Source: Epithemia pelagica
Taxonomy: Eukaryota > Protista > Bacillariophyta
Length of the DNA: 64,000 nt
Reading direction: 5' to 3'
NCBI GenBank assembly: GCA_946965045.2
Contig: OX337228.1
Location: forward strand, 6,919,077-6,983,076
The translations under genes were made by a program, and so were the position numbers. Positions 9,038-64,000 of this stretch are shown here, one piece after another. How positions within the stretch are numbered: position 1 is the stretch's first letter; each line of letters starts with the position of its first letter. Under the pieces are notes generated by a model. It saw only the letters and a list, made by a program, of their open reading frames with translations, made no database searches and had not been told where the DNA came from.

Positions 9038-11002
9038 ATGGGTCAAGACAGTGAGGAAGCAGCAGAGTTTGTGGTGACGGTGCGAAATGAGCATGTGAAA
9101 ATGAAAGAGTGGTACAACAGCAGCCACACCCACAGCCCGGTGACACGAATGCTACAGGACAAGTACGGTCCGTATCCCTCCATGTGGAAAGAAGTCCTGA
9201 ATTGGCCAGGATGGAAGGAAACTCGGAAGGAATATCTCAAGGCAATGCAACAACAAGAAAATCGTCCAGGAGGAGTTGCCGTCAAAATTGAGAGCGACAC
9301 CAATAACAATGGCACTGCTGGAGAGGCTCCCCGCAAACGAAAATCGCGATGGGGCAAAGCGGCATCCGAACCTTCGAATGGCCAGTCGGATCCTCCAGTG
9401 AACAAACGATTCGCTCCCCTACCACCAGTCCCATCCTCACGACAACCACCCCGTGTCGTATTGCCGAGCATGTCCTTGGTCAACACCAACTTGACGCAGC
9501 AACAACAACAGGATCTCCGAACCATGCAAGCCAAGCTTCGTGCCGTGAACGATCGTCTGGAAAATCTAGAAGTGGAAGCAGCACGTGTCGATGCGCTCCC
9601 ACGAGAACATCGAGATCGATCGCCTTCGCCGCCTCCAAGTAAGTATAATCGTTTGCTCACAATCGACTTTTGTGTTGCCTTTTGGGGTTCGAATAAGAGT
9701 CCATTCCATGTTTCTTGTAGCTTACCATCTTTTTCTTGTTTCTATATGTCTCTAGTTTACGGTGCTGATGGGAAACGAAAAAATACACGAGCGGTCCGTT
9801 GGAGGGAACGATACACGGCGGAGCGTCAAGACTTGTTGGAAAGTATCATGCGGTTATCCAACAAGGGCAACGTTGGACCCGTGTTACCAACGGGGGCGGC
9901 TTCCTTATTGGTACGACGGCGAGTCAAAAAGATTCTAGTACCCGTAGAAGAACATCCGAACTACAATTTTATTGGATTAATCATTGGACCACGAGGCAAG
10001 ACGCAAAAAGAATTGGAAGCCAAGACGGGCTGCAAAATTGCCATTCGCGGTCGGGGATCGGTCAAGGAGGGAGCTCGTGGTCGCCGGGATGGTAAAGTCA
10101 TGGACGGAGACAATGAACCCTTGCATGTGGCCATTTCGGGAGATGATCAACGTGCTGTGGATGCGGCATCGGAGATGATTGAACAAATGCTCGTCGTCAT
10201 TGACGATGAAAAGAATGTGCACAAACAACAGCAGCTTCGAGAATTGGCCCTCTTGAATGGTACATTGAAGGAAAATGATGCCTTTTGCGAAATTTGTGGT
10301 GAGAAAGGACATCGATCCTTTGAATGTCCCAAACGATTCCTTAACAAGGGTGCCATGGGGAAAGGCATCAAGTGTGCCATTTGTGGTGACACTAGTCATC
10401 CCACACGCGATTGTACGCGACGCAATCTGGACCCTACCAATCCTGCGGGCGGTGATGCCAACCAACAAGGAAGTGAACAAAAGATTGATTCTGAATATCT
10501 CTCTTTCATGGCTGAACTGGATGGCTAAAAGGCCAACCAGCCAGCCAACGAACCGATATCAAATGACGGTGGGGACAAACTTCCACCTCCACCACCCAAT
10601 GGAAGCCTTCCACCCTTGCCGCCTGCACCGGAAGGGCCACCACCCTTACCTCCCTCTGCAGCATCGACTACCAGTGGAACTACGCAACCTCCTCGTCCCT
10701 CCGCGCATGCCCCAAATTCTTTGTATAGAAATTTCCAACCCGAAGGAAGTATGGCACAGCCACAACAACAACAATATCATCAACAAGCAGGATATGGTGC
10801 GGGCTATAACAACCAACAGTATCAGTATGGGAGCTATGGACCACAATCACACCAGCAGCAGCCCCAACAAGCTACACCGCCACCTCAACAACAGCAGCAA
10901 GCAGCCACACCGATCAAACCAGGTGAAGAAACTGCCGGGTGGGACCCTTCTAGTTACTACGGTAGCTACGACAATGGGGGAGGAGGATTCAATTGGTGGT
11001 GA
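9038..11002 (+). CDS. SF1: Splicing factor 1 / branchpoint-bridging protein (intron 9639-9755) with an in-frame TAA at 10526-10528 before the Pro/Gln-rich tail
   Basis: ULM RKRKSRW; RSPSPPPIYGADGKRKNTR after splicing; KH-QUA2 NFIGLIIGPRGKTQKELE..TGCKIAIRGRGSVKEG; two CCHC knuckles. The same frame continues past the TAA to 11002. Start codon uncertain. Confidence 0.92.
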
Positions 11003-57716: not shown

Positions 57717-58337
57717 ATGGAACCCCGCGACCTAGGAGATGAGTTCTTCCATTGCCAGTATATCGATGAAAGCAAAACAGAGGAGGAAAATATCCAAGCA
57801 AAGGAAAATTTGGATCAAGACGGCCCTCCTTTGTCTCCCAACCTACAGACTCGACATCAGAGGAGTTGCGGAGGAACCTCCATCGCTTCATCCTACAATG
57901 AACGCAAACGCGTCGCAAGACTGTGCCGCGAATTTAGAAAGAAGACCACCAAACCGTGTTCCGTGTTTGGTTACGATCGATACCAGCGGTTTCGCGGCTT
58001 CTTCTTCTTTTGCAGCAATTGCAAGGATGCTGACGACAAGGAGAGAGATTCATCTGTCCGTGTCAACCGTACAACCAAGGATGGACCGTATACCTGCATG
58101 GCAGAACACGAGAGCATCATTTACCCAACTGACCGGATAAAGATTGAAATCAAGAAGCCTCACACAAGGACAAATTTGGGAAAGCCCACGAAGAAGAAAG
58201 CACCCCCCGACAGCAACAGAAAACGCAAGGACCCCCCAAACGAGGAAGATAGTACTTCTTCCAAAGCACAGAAAACCGAAGCAACAGCGGAAAGCGAAAC
58301 ATACTCGTGTTTTGAATCGTCGGATGAAGAGCCCTAA
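57717..58337 (+). CDS. Cys/His-motif protein (C-x2-C-x24-C-x3-H), probably 3'-truncated
   Basis: FFCSNC...YTCMAEH. The stop codon is the TAA of the CCCTAAGG junction at 58332. Confidence 0.55.
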   Translation: MEPRDLGDEFFHCQYIDESKTEEENIQAKENLDQDGPPLSPNLQTRHQRSCGGTSIASSYNERKRVARLCREFRKKTTKPCSVFGYDRYQRFRGFFFFCSNCKDADDKERDSSVRVNRTTKDGPYTCMAEHESIIYPTDRIKIEIKKPHTRTNLGKPTKKKAPPDSNRKRKDPPNEEDSTSSKAQKTEATAESETYSCFESSDEEP

Positions 58338-58510
58338 GGAGAAAGTGCCTGTCCGTAGGCCTACGTAGACTCTAGCGTCCCACTGCAGAACAGCCCCCAT
58401 CCCACTTGTCCCACTGTAGAGCCGCCCTCTGTCCCACTGCAGAAGTGCCCTGTCCCACTGCAGAACAGCCTGCTGTCCCACTGCAGAACAGCCCACTAGA
58501 ACAGCCCTAT
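58332..58510 (+). repeat. Element end, class A: CCCTAAGG plus five ~21-23-bp TGTCCCACTGCAGAACAGCCC repeats
   Basis: Units at about 58377, 58407, 58430, 58451, 58474; leader homologous to 59616. Confidence 0.85.
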
Positions 58511-58526
58511 TCTAGTCATACCTATG

Positions 58527-59075
58527 CCCTAAGGATATTTGCCTTTTTTGGGTGTCTTTAGTACTAGACACCGTAGGATTTGAACGTGTGCATATGAGCA
58601 CAAGTGGCTATAGTATCTGTGCATATGAGCACTGATATATATGCCTTTTGTTGCAAAAGAGCACTGCCCGTTGTGCAGATGAGCACAGAATGTCTATGCC
58701 CCGCTCAAGTCTTATTTCTAAGCACTCATATTCAATATGAGTGACTAATTTCATTGATTACTAACCATTACCACACTCTTAGTTGTTCCCCCATTCTTTG
58801 GCGCGAAAAGCTCGCCTGCGTGTCCCTTCGCGCCAAACATCTTCACCTGACAACCTTAATTGGCCCTAAGGATATTTCACTTTTTTGGGAGCTTTTAGTA
58901 CTAGAGACCGTAGAATTTGAACATCTGCATATGAGCACAAAATCCTATAGTGCCTGTTGCATATGAGCAAGGATTTGTTGCGGATGAGCTGCAATTTGTT
59001 ACGCTTTTGTTGCGATTGAGCAGTGGCCTTGTCTATGCCCCTTTGACCACTCCCCAAAAGCAGTCATATTCAATA
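58527..59075 (+). repeat. Two class-B element ends (58527, 58864): CCCTAAGG plus GTGCATATGAGCAC-type pseudo-palindromes
   Basis: ccctaaggatattt..ttttttggg..tttagtactaga.accgtag.atttgaac in both. Motif copies at 58588, 58619, 58673, 58925, 58957. Confidence 0.85.
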
Positions 59076-59268
59076 TGCTCTAAACTGGCCCAATACTTTT
59101 CAGAGCTCTGCCAGTTAGGTTTTTGTCTCGCCCTACTCTACATAGAAGAATCAAATTGGATAAACAGCAAAGAGTGTGGAGGCTAGTTTAGGTTTTTCTA
59201 TCCAAAGATTTTGGAGTGTTCTACTTCCCGCTCGCTAACTCGCGCGCCAGCAAGCCACTTTGGATTGA

Positions 59269-59616
59269 CTAATCTACATCCACTCGCACCCGGTCGCCAT
59301 TATCAACTACATCGGTGGTCAGGGCATCAACGATAGGGAGCTCCTCTAGGTTGCCGTCATCCACAATGAGCACTGGTGGAGTGTCTTTGGGAGTGCTGAA
59401 TGCAAATCTAGCTTGGAGCCCCCGTCTACGTCGTTCTTGGTAAGACATGGGCGGGATCGCATCAATGATGCTTTCACTCCTCATGTCTGTGCCCTGGTCC
59501 ATATTGTCATTTGCAGTTGATAGGTTGGTGGGGGAGATTGATGAGGAGGTTGTCCATGAAAAAACCGAGGACCTTGAGCTTGCCGAGGTAGTCGAAATCG
59601 GGCGGCAAAGGAGGAC
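59269..59616 (-). pseudogene. 3' fragment of an unknown gene, cut at the 59616 junction
   Basis: Open minus frame from the CCCTAAGG site to a stop at 59269 (..SYQERRRRGLQARFAFSTP..). Confidence 0.35.
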
Positions 59617-59810
59617 CCTAAGGAGAAAGTGCTCGTGCGTAGGCCCTCGTAGACTCTGTACTGCATATTTTCCCACCTGGGAACAGCCCCTGTCTCATAT
59701 TTTCCCACCTGGGAACAGCCCCTGTCTCATATTTTCCCACCTGGGAACAGCCCTCGTCCTCATATTTTCCCACCTGGGAACAGCCCCTTTCTCACTATAG
59801 AACAGCCCAC
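59616..59810 (+). repeat. Element end, class A: CCCTAAGG plus four 32-33-bp CATATTTTCCCACCTGGGAACAGCCC repeats
   Basis: Units at 59664, 59696, 59728, 59761. Confidence 0.9.
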
Positions 59811-60267
59811 CTTCCCCATATTTTCCAATTTGGGGTCGTATTCCCCCTCTGTTGTACAGCCCTCATCCCCAATATACTCCCAAGCCCATACATATTCAAG
59901 CTAGGATTTCCTAGATATAAGCTAGATCTATACACATGACTATCGATAGTATTAATTTTCTTCACTTGAAAATCTCATTTTTTGGTCATTGGGCCCAACA
60001 CCAGTCATTCTGTTCAAGATTTCTGGTGAATGACCCTCCTTTGGGCCTGTTGCCTTTGGGTATGTTTTCGCACGAGAATCATACATAGATGACTCGTCAC
60101 ATTCTGCTGGGTGACTTCATAGTTCCTCCTGCCGTGGTACATGCATGTTTGATTGTTGCCAACACACACCTCTATCAGCAATCAACCAGTATTGTGAATC
60201 TATGGTGAGTGCTTGATACCGAAAGCATCTATGATTCATCATTCTCCATTCCTATTTCTTACATCAG

Positions 60268-60921
60268 CTACTTTCTACTATTCACATTGGCACACAGGAA
60301 GGAGTTGTACGAGGGAATGTCACATGTCAGCTCCAGTAAAGTCTCTTCCAGGCTTGCTGCAGGTCTCGTTCTCTTGTGGACATGAAAAATAAGTCGCTTC
60401 AAGCACCTTTGAAGTGGGCAGTCTCTGGGCCCATGAGGAACATAGCCTGGTCTGTTGAAGGGCTCGAAACAGGCTAAACAGGCTTTGTTCTTGAGCACCC
60501 GAGAAACACTCACCGGACAGTTACTTCTTCGGTGGTTCGTTGATCCACAATTGAAACAGGATCCATAGTCAAGGCACTTCTCCCCATTGCATGTTGCATC
60601 CATGCAAACAACACATTGAACAATCAACAGTTGGATGCACTCTTCTGCCATGGACGTTTCAATGTCTTGTCGTCTGACTCTTTCGACTACTTGTGTCTGT
60701 CCACTCTCTTGGGCCTTTTTCCTACAGAAATCGCAAACCCCACAATGTGTTACACGAATGCCAAACTTCTGTGAAATATTTGCAACACAACAACCATGCT
60801 CTTGCAACAAATTTTTTATGGAAGCTGATCCAAATATGGCTTCGAAGCTTTTCCTTGGCCGCTCTCCAACAATCAACCGTTTTGCCTGAAGCGTCTTCAG
60901 GGTCATGTCCTCGTCCATGTC
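60268..60921 (-). pseudogene. C-terminal fragment of a RecQ-type (telomere-linked-helicase-like) protein, cut at the 60922 junction
   Basis: GCCVANISQKFG..HCGVCDFC resembles the RecQ zinc-binding CRR..L..YFG..CG.CD.C. It is followed by the CCHC knuckle CFNCGSTNHRRSNC and more Cys/His motifs. No helicase core present. Confidence 0.6.
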
Positions 60922-63411
60922 CCCTAAGGGTTTTGCTAGAAATCGACCTTTTTGTCGTGCGCACTAAGCTCATTCTGTAGAATCACATGCGCGACCACAA
61001 AAAGGTCAATTTTGAATCACTGTATTGTTGCGTGCAAAAATTTAATGCAACCACAAAAAGGTCGATTTCGACCACAAGAAGGTCGATTTGCAAACCTACA
61101 TTAACTCTCCATAGTAAACCATATTCCTTCTTGTCGCTCAAAGATTTTGAGGTGAATGATCTCTGGTGTTAGGGCCTTTTCAGTTTTTGAGGTGAATGAC
61201 CCTCTTTAGGGCCTCTTTTTTGGCTGCAAAGGGTCATACGTCCCAAACCTATTTTGACCATAGGAACGACAACAGCCACCATGGAGTTTGACGATTACTT
61301 GGGGCTTGTGGACTTTGCCACACCCTGTGGCTTGGTCTGTAAGCTCTGTGGTGGTGGTTTCCGAGCAAACATGAAGTGTCTTGCCCGCCACGCCAAGACC
61401 TGCTCCAAAATTCATGGGGTGTCCTTTCGCTTTCCTGGGAGACATCTTGGTAACAAAATACACACTCTTGTGGAGAATGCCAACAACCAACCGTTTGATT
61501 GTTTCATTCATGAGTCAAATGATACAAGAATCAAGTATTTCTGTAGTGACTGTGACAAGATGTTTCATGTGAAGCTTTTGTGCGAGAAGCACGTTGCTGG
61601 TTGTTGCGCTAGTGCCAAAGTCATTGCCAAGACTTTCCTCAAGCTGAAGTGTGGATGCTTCATGCCAAGGCCCCAAAGAGAAACCATGCAGCAAGAAACC
61701 AACTGGACCCCAATAATTCAAGTTGAGAATTCAACATTTACCATGCCGCTGCCCTGCAGCAGGTTACCCAACGAGTTTGCAAGTTCGATTGAACCATTAT
61801 TGCATCCAAGCGACACTTTGGGAAGGTGGCCCGATGTACTGAGTAATATGATTCCTGGCACGTTGGAGAATGCCCTTGGAGACATTGAACAAGGAATTAT
61901 GTTTGAAGCCGAGTATCATAAGAGAGGAAATAACACTGCAATCAACCGACTCTATCAGGTTGGTTGTTACCTTCTGGACAGGATGGCTTCGATCGTAATG
62001 GGGATTCCAGCAGACATTCGGAGTCGGATTGCTAAGTTTGCTTTCCATGATGGTGATGTGGATCACTCATGGAATTTCAGCCATCGACATGATTATGACA
62101 AACGAGTGAAACCTCTACTCCTCTCTCTCTTGTGTTTCCTGCATCAGAGGCAGTGGAAGAGATGGGACTATTTTTGCCACCAGGTTGAAGGTGATGGATT
62201 CTCTGTGGACACTGCATTCCAAAATTGTGTTCTTGGGTCACTCCTGACAGAGTTGGTACTCGACAATGAGATTTCTTCTTGGTCCGACTCAGGGGTAGTG
62301 TTACTGTTCTCTCGGCAGAGGTTGTTCACTAAGACGAAGAATGGCTTGAGGTTGAAATCATGTGGAGTTGCCGCTCAAGAACTCGGTGAGTCCCCCTTTC
62401 CCCCTGTCAATGAATATACTTGGTTGTTCAAATCTCATGTCTTCTTTCATCTCTTTCTAGCTGACCTTTTACATCTGCTTCGCTGTGGGGTTGCGGCTGG
62501 CTTAAAGTACTACGATGGGCAGGGCAAGTTGGTCGAGCAGGTCATGGAACGGTACAGACATTGTCCTACAATACACTTTCTCTGTCCTAAGATTTATTCT
62601 TTGAGGAAGCAATATCAAGAGAAGCCTCCTAAAAGGGAGGTTGTGGTCGATGAGTTCTTCAATATCATTGTTGATGGACATGCATTCCAAAAAGCACATT
62701 GGTCTAAGGTCGTTCCTACGGTTGTGGAAAAGGCCCATGGTATTTTTGATGCATGCTTTGTCGGAAAGGCATCCGAGAAATTCCTCTGCTTAGATGGTGA
62801 CTTGACTATTGTGGAGTGGTCCAAGGGTTTGGGATCGCTGCCAGATGGTACCAACACACAAGATTTGGAATGCAAGGAACTGGTGAAAAGTCAGTTCGAA
62901 CGACTAACTGCCTTGATGGAATTTGCCATCCACGGTTTTGGCTGTGGTGCAGATCGGTTCTCAGAGGTCCATTGTCTCGATGTGACTCAGCTTCGGTGGA
63001 AAAATACAAACTACCAAGATTTATATGTTTCTGCACCGAGTCGTAAACAACCCAAACTGCAAGCTTATGATCGACCCCCCGTTGAACACAAGATGCCTCG
63101 GATCATAGCAAGGTGTCTATTTCTCTACAGAGTTGTGGTGCTGAAAGTTTGGAATGGGCCCAATGCAAGGAGATTTTTTCCACAATATGGTAATGACCGG
63201 AGGTTTTTCTTTGAGGATGTTGCCCAAGAGATTTTCAGCTTGGATAGTCGTCCTGGTTCGGTGGTTGTTCGACAGTTCTGGACTTCTCTTGTGAACTTGC
63301 TCTTTCCAGACAGCAACAGTCAGGCATTGGTCTCTTCAACAGCATTGAGTGAGTTGAGTAAGCACTCCCAACAGACTGCAATGTCCAACTACCAGACACG
63401 CGTGAGCAACA
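60922..63411 (+). mobile_element. Tyrosine-recombinase-encoding element, left end intact, right part replaced by telomere
   Basis: CCCTAAGGG terminus; subterminal ACCACAAAAAGGTCGATTT motif as 1 inverted (60940) and 3 direct copies (60994, 61050, 61071); long ORF. Confidence 0.7.
61281..63411 (+). CDS. ~685-aa zinc-finger plus tyrosine-recombinase-like protein with no stop codon (intron 62386-62460)
   Basis: GCCACCATGG start; CKLC..H..C and CSDCDKMF..KHV..C fingers; HGFGCGADRFSE (R), SRKQ (K), VRQFW (R), SKHSQQTAMSNY (H, Y at 63390). My codon-by-codon translation is open into the telomere. Confidence 0.75.
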
Positions 63412-64000
63412 TTAGGGTTAGGGTTAGGGTTAGGTTTAGGGTTAGGTTTAGGGTTAGGGTTAGGGTTAGGGTTAGGGTTAGGGTTAGGGTTAGGGTTAGG
63501 GTTAGGGTTAGGGTTAGGGTTAGGGTTAGGGTTAGGGTTAGGGTTAGGGTTAGGGTTAGGGTTAGGGTTAGGGTTAGGGTTAGGGTTAGGGTTAGGGTTA
63601 GGGTTAGGGTTAGGGTTAGGGTTAGGGTTAGGGTTAGGGTTAGGGTTAGGGTTAGGGTTAGGGTTAGGGTTAGGGTTAGGGTTAGGGTTAGGGTTAGGGT
63701 TAGGGTTAGGGTTAGGGTTAGGGTTAGGGTTAGGGTTAGGGTTAGGGTTAGGGTTAGGGTTAGGGTTAGGGTTAGGGTTAGGGTTAGGGTTAGGGTTAGG
63801 GTTAGGGTTAGGGTTAGGGTTAGGGTTAGGGTTAGGGTTAGGGTTAGGGTTAGGGTTAGGGTTAGGGTTAGGGTTAGGGTTAGGGTTAGGGTTAGGGTTA
63901 GGGTTAGGGTTAGGGTTAGGGTTAGGGTTAGGGTTAGGGTTAGGGTTAGGGTTAGGGTTAGGGTTAGGGTTAGGGTTAGGGTTAGGGTTAGGGTTAGGGT
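63412..64000 (+). repeat. Telomere (TTAGGG)n, about 98 units, with two TTAGGT variants near the junction
   Basis: Seen directly; variant units at about 63430-63450. Confidence 0.99.

Follow-up and report, generated by a model that had tools for sequence, protein, structure and literature searches.

A telomere-truncated gene of the telomere-linked helicase type at a diatom chromosome end, with a predicted tyrosine-recombinase-fold module

We examined a stretch of 64,000 nucleotides from the diatom Epithemia pelagica (GenBank assembly GCA_946965045.2, contig OX337228.1, positions 6,919,077 to 6,983,076 of the forward strand). This whole stretch is referred to as the window and coordinates count from its first nucleotide. 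The window runs out through a telomere. The last gene before this chromosome end is the 5' half of a telomere-linked helicase (TLH)-type gene, truncated by the telomere. The gene and the features beside it are as follows.

58332..59623, + strand: stack of four more CCCTAAGG boundaries (58332, 58527, 58864 and 59616), each unit cut by the next boundary
60268..60918, - strand: inverted C-terminal piece of a different unit carrying this type of gene, with RecQ-C zinc region and CCHC knuckle
60922..60929, + strand: unit boundary CCCTAAGG, the centromere-side edge; abuts the truncated end of the preceding inverted unit
60930..61280, + strand: 5' leader, with four AAATCGACCTTTTTGTCG-like motif copies in both orientations (60931-61092) and a reused CCCT joining site (61200-61203)
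61281..62385, + strand: exon 1, with the start ATG, a pair of C2HC-type zinc fingers and the beginning of a core-binding-like helical region
62386..62460, + strand: putative intron of 75 nt, phase 1, GTGAGT...TAG, in frame and with no stop
62461..63411, + strand: exon 2, with the predicted tyrosine-recombinase-fold catalytic domain; ends 7 codons past the Tyr
63412..64000, + strand: (TTAGGG)n telomere, joined straight onto the broken gene

The ATG (61281-61283) lies within the context GCCACCATGG (61275-61284). From here to 63411 the gene is a single open frame, as the original prediction described. It holds 710 codons and is stop-free to 63410; by our own arithmetic, the expected chance of such a run is approximately (61/64)^710, or 1e-15. 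The gene was missing from the list of open reading frames (ORFs) because that list drops ORFs running off the window end. Past 63410, the frame reads on as (Arg-Val)n across the telomere tract. Pattern matching places the C2HC-type zinc fingers at amino acids (aa) 16-41 and 88-109, so the zinc fingers first proposed for this protein are present. The first telomere repeats (63412-63460) include two TTAGGT variants, after which the tract is uniform.

A 75-nt GT-AG intron had also been proposed. The putative intron is in frame and lacks a stop. Hence, the ORF does not need it to be removed and alone is no proof of it; with the intron spliced out, 685 codons remain. Two observations favour splicing. 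Exactly these 25 residues are absent from all other family members, the insertion being confined to this subfamily. They are also the sole long low-confidence stretch of the structure model, with a predicted local distance difference test score (pLDDT) below 50 at residues 215-237. The three public sequencing runs that hold the locus behave as genomic assemblies, with contigs of up to 509 kb and no splice joint in them. We regard the intron as plausible.

In intact paralogs, the coding sequence goes on beyond the point equivalent to 63411. For example, L001, a chromosome end from another assembly, carries the same sequence at 99% nucleotide identity and reads coding where the window turns to TTAGGG. 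Hence, the telomere truncates the window gene. This copy has no helicase, RecQ zinc module, knuckles or stop codon, and its telomere repeats were presumably added by telomerase. It differs from its nearest relative at 16 nucleotides. The ratio of nonsynonymous to synonymous substitution rates (dN/dS) between the two is 0.82, as expected for recent dead copies. The open frame had been taken as a sign of recent activity. Instead, its intactness reflects recent copying, and the window gene is a recent, non-functional copy. Between diverged copies of the window subfamily dN/dS is 0.23-0.32; the protein is therefore under constraint.

The helicase part of the protein is known from paralogs of the truncated window copy. 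The only close database relative, P0001, continues into helicase motifs 0 and I. Complete paralogs of 1307 aa (in L001) and 1421 aa (P0156, in L002) match Pfam DEAD and Helicase_C, and a 951-aa inverted copy in L001 matches zf-CCHC. With the helicase profile, RECQL5 (expectation value (E) 1.8e-22), RECQ1, E. coli RecQ, BLM and WRN rank ahead of DEAD-box proteins. Word-indexed homolog searches returned just same-genome copies and one relative. An exhaustive profile search returned 353 cluster representatives, 132 of them at E <=1e-30 and many 1300-1600 aa long, including a protein of Fistulifera solaris. Of the 43 homologs that reach 1200 aa or more, 38 have a Walker A motif directly after the domain that precedes the helicase (median offset 13 residues). 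N-terminal C2H2-like fingers are found in 36 of the same 43 and a CCHC knuckle in 38. Read from these sequences, the predicted order in the full protein is two zinc fingers, a recombinase-fold module, a RecQ-like helicase, a cysteine-rich region and CCHC knuckles. A link between recombinase and helicase had been anticipated, and in full-length paralogs the two are encoded by a single gene, not by two.

We then considered the middle domain. The N-terminal 740 residues gave no Pfam match, whether the window ORF, 70 homologs or family profiles were used, and no recombinase sequence match in the PDB. A first AlphaFold run, from a 6-sequence alignment, was set aside (pLDDT 56.7). With a 70-sequence alignment, a model of P0001 residues 150-790 reached a pLDDT of 85.8 and a predicted template modelling score of 0.79. 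P0001 is a complete paralog and is 98% identical to the window protein over all 710 residues. This model was compared with 48,161 PDB chains using VIA-align, without reliance on Foldseek. Recombinases, type IB topoisomerases, protelomerases, Ndc10, QRICH1 or related regulatory folds fill 28 of the 30 top rows. The matches include XerA (Z 9.4, 159 aligned residues), XerH (Z 9.0, 258 residues), Cre (Z 8.5, 241 residues), XerD (Z 8.0-8.5, 154-157 residues), the integron integrase IntI (Z 7.8, 237 residues) and type IB topoisomerases (Z 6.0-7.2, 144-160 residues). Further matches were to the lambda, HP1, P2 and SSV1 integrases, Flp, TelK, TelA, Ndc10 and QRICH1. Flp, TelA and XerH also lead the list in a Foldseek search of the PDB, with no match at E <0.1. 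A shape search of the ESM Atlas was consistent with a recombinase fold.

The catalytic domain comprises model residues 303-576, equivalent to aa 452-725. Long alignments, to XerH, Cre, IntI, Tn1549 Int and lambda Int, span both this domain and a helical N-terminal domain (model residues 66-300). Those to XerH, Cre and IntI begin at model residues 66-87 (aa 215-236). Hence, the VIA-align superpositions suggest that a core-binding-like domain precedes the catalytic domain, as in strict-sense tyrosine recombinases. The original prediction had named a structural comparison as its check, and the model does match Xer, Cre, IntI and topoisomerase IB.

Five candidate catalytic residues had been picked out in the window protein. 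All exist, in the order given, and are near-invariant in homologs from the exhaustive profile search (approximately 150 clusters, mutually <50% identical).

62955-57, + strand: R559 (R534 if spliced), kept in 144 of 145 homologs
63045-47, + strand: K589 (K564 if spliced), kept in 143 of 143
63270-72, + strand: R664 (R639 if spliced), kept in 132 of 136
63363-65, + strand: H695 (H670 if spliced), kept in 127 of 127
63390-92, + strand: Y704 (Y679 if spliced), kept in 125 of 127

The R-K-R-H-Y columns are also invariant in alignments of 70 and 81 sequences. Three residues before R664, where canonical enzymes have the His of HxxR, the 136 homologs have L, T, I, V or R. It is never His, in line with the replacement first reported from the window alone. 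Residue spacing in the window protein is R-30-K-75-R-31-H-9-Y. The equivalent spacings are 24, 75, 23 and 9 in XerD and 28, 91, 23 and 9 in Cre, and the window protein is close to both. In hhalign against single sequences taken from annotated records, R559 aligns with Cre R173 and XerD R148, and K589 with Cre K201; the register is correct and the statistics are weak. Taken together, the structure model and these columns identify the middle domain as a predicted two-domain tyrosine-recombinase-fold module with a near-invariant R-K-R-H-Y set.

To describe the surrounding units, we compared joints at nine chromosome ends: the window and L001-L008, the latter all from one assembly. The gene copies of L001-L008 lie at a contig end in seven of eight cases and approximately 5 kb from one in L006; telomere repeats are visible in two. 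Hence, the gene family is multicopy at chromosome ends, where units form stacks in which the boundary of one unit truncates the unit before it. The boundary CCCTAAGG was found 31 times. In 30 cases it is oriented toward the telomere and the exception is inside coding sequence. To its right there are three sequence families, A, B and C, the window gene belonging to family C. To its left there is always a truncated remnant of something else. The association of the gene with CCCTAAGG-starting units, noted in the original prediction, therefore stands. The window boundary at 60922 and the sequence after it recur in L001 at 9642 and at three positions in L007. The inverted fragment at 60268..60918 has its 5' side cut at the 60922 joint. 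It matches zf-CCHC (E 9.4e-5) and, by tblastn, aa 1120-1303 of the 1307-aa paralog.

Subfamily C2 begins with CCCTAATAG instead of CCCTAAGG. Therefore, the constant part of the boundary is CCCTAA. This is one telomeric C-strand repeat, with polarity opposite to that of the adjoining telomere. A complete unit opens with the CCCTAA(GG) boundary, followed by the gene, a 178-bp satellite and the telomere. The leader beside the boundary bears family-specific repeats; in family C these are the four AAATCGACCTTTTTGTCG-like copies, in both orientations (D1 and I1-I3). These four copies are candidate protein-binding sites. Window positions 59616-60918, in an arrangement also found in L001 and L002, hold a family A boundary, then C-rich 23-bp repeats and then an inverted helicase gene copy. 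Hence, the boundary can sit 3' of a gene, and its polarity tracks the telomere rather than the gene.

The satellite is G/T-rich and fills the gap between stop codon and telomere in complete copies (L001:19694-22386 and L002:14293-17698). It is common to families B and C. The complete family C copy of L002 is preceded by an inverted unit, within which lies a Copia-type reverse transcriptase ORF (RVT_2, L002:6763-7734).

Next, we compared joints with their targets. For 15 distinct joints, an uninterrupted counterpart of the left flank was available. In all 15 the counterpart continues with CCC and then T (8 cases) or A (7 cases), a site we write as CCCW. After CCC, G or C never occurs at targets, against a background of 0.39, and later target positions are random. 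The joint itself is always CCCT, even at CCCA targets. Therefore, the exchange point is within or at the edge of CCC. On the donor side, the boundary is base-exact in 30 joints.

Targets include both element and non-element DNA. Contigs from the public runs show family A units attached at two CCCT targets in the window sequence, one ending at 61203 and the other at 61323-61326. In the same contigs, telomere was added after 61295. The same left flank can also be joined to different families (L001:12745 and L007:9642; L006:6655 and L007:5923; L006:7838 and window 58864). Either the same CCCW site was reused or exchange took place between existing boundaries. The non-element target is in L007. 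Here, positions 1-1482 are 97% identical to window 9214-10700, ordinary genic DNA approximately 53 kb inside the window, and are joined directly to a family C unit at CCCT (window 10697-10700). The L007 contig could be an allele or duplicate of the window arm, truncated and capped by elements.

Several other origins for the joints were rejected. End-to-end telomere fusion would give the wrong repeat polarity. Annealing of long telomeric overhangs was set aside given that joints always hold exactly one repeat. Hairpin resolution of the protelomerase type was also dropped; a 9-bp palindrome occurs in one subfamily only and TelK and TelA match weakly. Two L008 joints without CCCTAAGG (11905 and 12434) were considered as reciprocal products and ruled out, their overlaps being 1-2 bp and not at CCCW. 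They are internal rearrangements of a family C copy, perhaps from repair of another kind or from misassembly.

In architecture the gene belongs with the TLH family. The original prediction had named Cryptons and Starships as eukaryotic tyrosine-recombinase elements, and the gene is of neither type. In the published description, TLH proteins have two N-terminal C2H2 motifs, a 'TLH domain' (approximately 250 residues) that immediately precedes the helicase, and RecQ motifs; the function of the protein is given there as undetermined. TLH genes of Magnaporthe, Ustilago, Metarhizium, Fusarium, Schizosaccharomyces pombe (tlh1/2) and the choanoflagellate Monosiga resemble the present gene in being multicopy and the last gene before the telomere. 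The domain order also agrees, with two N-terminal fingers, a conserved domain upstream of RecQ motifs and further C-terminal zinc motifs. Unlike in fungal TLH proteins, the fingers of the window subfamily are C2HC, and homologs occur in diatoms such as Fistulifera. Beyond the published account, we read the 'TLH domain' as a probable recombinase-fold catalytic domain and define a precise unit boundary and target site. The element type had been thought undescribed in diatoms. Our literature search found no description of the TLH family in diatoms; the family itself is already described in fungi and Monosiga.

The likeness to fungal TLH proteins rests on structure matches together with the published domain order. 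In the AlphaFold DB, two diatom-like entries are followed by fungal DEAD/DEAH-box helicase, DNA 3'-5' helicase and C2H2-type proteins (E 3e-9 to 1e-4). In Swiss-Prot, the best structural matches are N-terminal parts (residues ~100-860) of yeast Y' element helicases (E 1e-6, probability 1.0). Next comes S. pombe Tlh1 (E 0.14), ahead of XerS, Flp and XerD. The Y' element of Saccharomyces cerevisiae (Y'-Help1/YRF1) is likewise a helicase-encoding repeat that is subtelomeric, present in multiple copies and able to form stacks; template modelling scores for the match of Y'-Help1 to the window-family model are low (~0.3). Telomere-repeat tracts lie between Y' copies, which spread by homologous recombination. 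In a literature search, we found no paper tying telomere-linked helicase, YRF1 or Y' to tyrosine recombinases.

Among recombinases, XerA, XerD, XerH, Cre and the integron integrase, together with type IB topoisomerases, share with the predicted module its two-domain fold, the order and spacing of R-K-R-H-Y and the nine residues from H to Y. Compared with bacterial and phage recombinases, the module has no detectable sequence similarity, has (L/T/I/V)xxR for HxxR and sits inside a protein of 1300-1600 residues. Starships, which have a DUF3435 recombinase (Captain) at their 5' end and carry cargo genes, were rejected as relatives; the N-terminal 640 residues of 70 members gave no Pfam match and the units have no cargo.

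The anatomy of the joints fits site-specific joining. On this basis, we infer that an enzyme of the window family would make the CCCTAAGG joints. The interpretation that we favour is that the TLH-type gene encodes a recombinase-helicase whose module joins the CCCTAA boundary to CCCW sites, so moving terminal units between chromosome ends; we give this a probability of about 60%. Briefly, the recombinase module would recognise the CCCTAA boundary and the adjacent family-specific repeats. Strand exchange would occur with a CCCW site at another chromosome end, the first exchange needing only CCC. The helicase may process a branched or single-stranded intermediate, and helicase or replication would complete the reaction. 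As a result, a whole terminal unit and its telomere would be moved or copied onto the other chromosome end.

Several observations weigh against this interpretation. At the level of sequence, there is no significant link to canonical recombinases: Pfam and PDB sequence searches give no match, and the hhalign probability is <=8% for Cre, XerD and an alignment of three recombinases. Z scores of 8-9.4 are in the range that the tool calls 'middling', so that the structural case rests on the uniformity of the hit list. The ends compared showed neither a downstream (3') boundary nor a circular form or reciprocal product. Microhomology-mediated end joining is another possible source of the three-base CCC overlap. 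Full-length homologs in contigs L012-L015, from other organisms, have ordinary ORFs to either side, and a look upstream of them revealed no CCCTAA boundary. The terminal lifestyle of the gene is perhaps not universal, or these contigs are too short to show it. Finally, with the HxxR His absent, the active site resembles that of topoisomerase IB as much as that of a recombinase. This last point leads to the most serious rival. The protein could be a host telomere-maintenance enzyme, in which a RecQ helicase and a topoisomerase-IB-like swivel or nicking module aid recombination-based telomere repair. Stacked joints would then arise passively, by microhomology-mediated joining or break-induced copying at CCC. 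Helicase-topoisomerase partnerships exist elsewhere, as in reverse gyrase and Sgs1-Top3. An R-K-R-H-Y set lacking the HxxR His is what type IB topoisomerases have, their structures do match (Z 6-7.2), the gene is under purifying selection, and telomere healing and variable ends are frequent in the host organism. However, Xer, Cre and IntI score above topoisomerase IB and align over the N-terminal domain too. Passive joining also sits poorly with the joints. Position 4 of the target is always A or T, though an A there gives no homology; the donor boundary is exact to the base in all 30 joints; and each family has its own subterminal repeats beside the boundary. We therefore judge a telomere-maintenance role less likely than a mobilising one.

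Two further rivals were weighed. The units could be ordinary Crypton-type transposons, excised as circles and inserted anywhere, their telomeric look reflecting tolerated insertions. Crypton recombinases have the same fold. In Cryptons, a short terminal sequence is proposed to recombine with a near-identical target (CACCG with CAYCG in Chlamydomonas), terminal repeats are 5-6 bp, and CryptonS elements are known from oomycetes and one diatom. The proposed joining of a terminal sequence to a near-identical target is thus common to both systems. However, Cryptons carry a recombinase by itself, with or without GCR1_C, between two defined ends with short terminal direct repeats. They encode no helicase, and the word 'helicase' occurs 0 times in the paper that defines them, whereas here a RecQ helicase and zinc knuckles are fused to the module. 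The His of the Crypton R-H-R-Y set is missing here. Nor do the ends agree. The present units have one defined end, the other being the telomere, and no downstream boundary or remainder of an interrupted target was seen; complete units end in satellite and telomere, and boundaries all face the telomere. A Crypton is thus a slim prospect. Slimmer still is a domesticated, catalytically dead fold that serves in DNA or protein binding only, as in Ndc10 or DUF3504 proteins. Ndc10 and QRICH1 are among the structural matches and one canonical catalytic His is missing. However, 125 of 127 homologs retain the Tyr nucleophile, and the other four residues (two Arg, one Lys and one His) persist in 97-100% across deep divergence. 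According to the paper that defines Cryptons, neither the Tyr nor the second Arg survives in any of the domesticated DUF3504 proteins, in contrast to the retention of these residues here.

Researchers have known of TLH genes and of the Y' elements of yeast for decades, and that Y' originated as a mobile element is an old, unanswered suggestion. Our analysis extends the TLH family to diatoms. It also offers a concrete catalytic hypothesis for the conserved middle domain, namely five near-invariant residues that would form a recombinase or topoisomerase-IB-type site. In addition, it defines a candidate DNA substrate, CCCTAA(GG) joined to CCCW. We suggest tentatively, and at somewhat less than even odds, that TLH genes of fungi and Monosiga and yeast Y' elements all belong, as relics or as still active members, to a single ancient class of mobile element at chromosome ends. 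Their 'TLH domain' would be an active enzyme of the tyrosine recombinase/topoisomerase-IB type that joins CCCTAA to CCCW. If so, elements able to transplant a terminal unit, telomere included, to other chromosome ends would occur across several eukaryotic lineages. Such activity would provide for DNA-based spreading and repair of chromosome ends, unlike telomerase or the retrotransposon telomeres of Drosophila.

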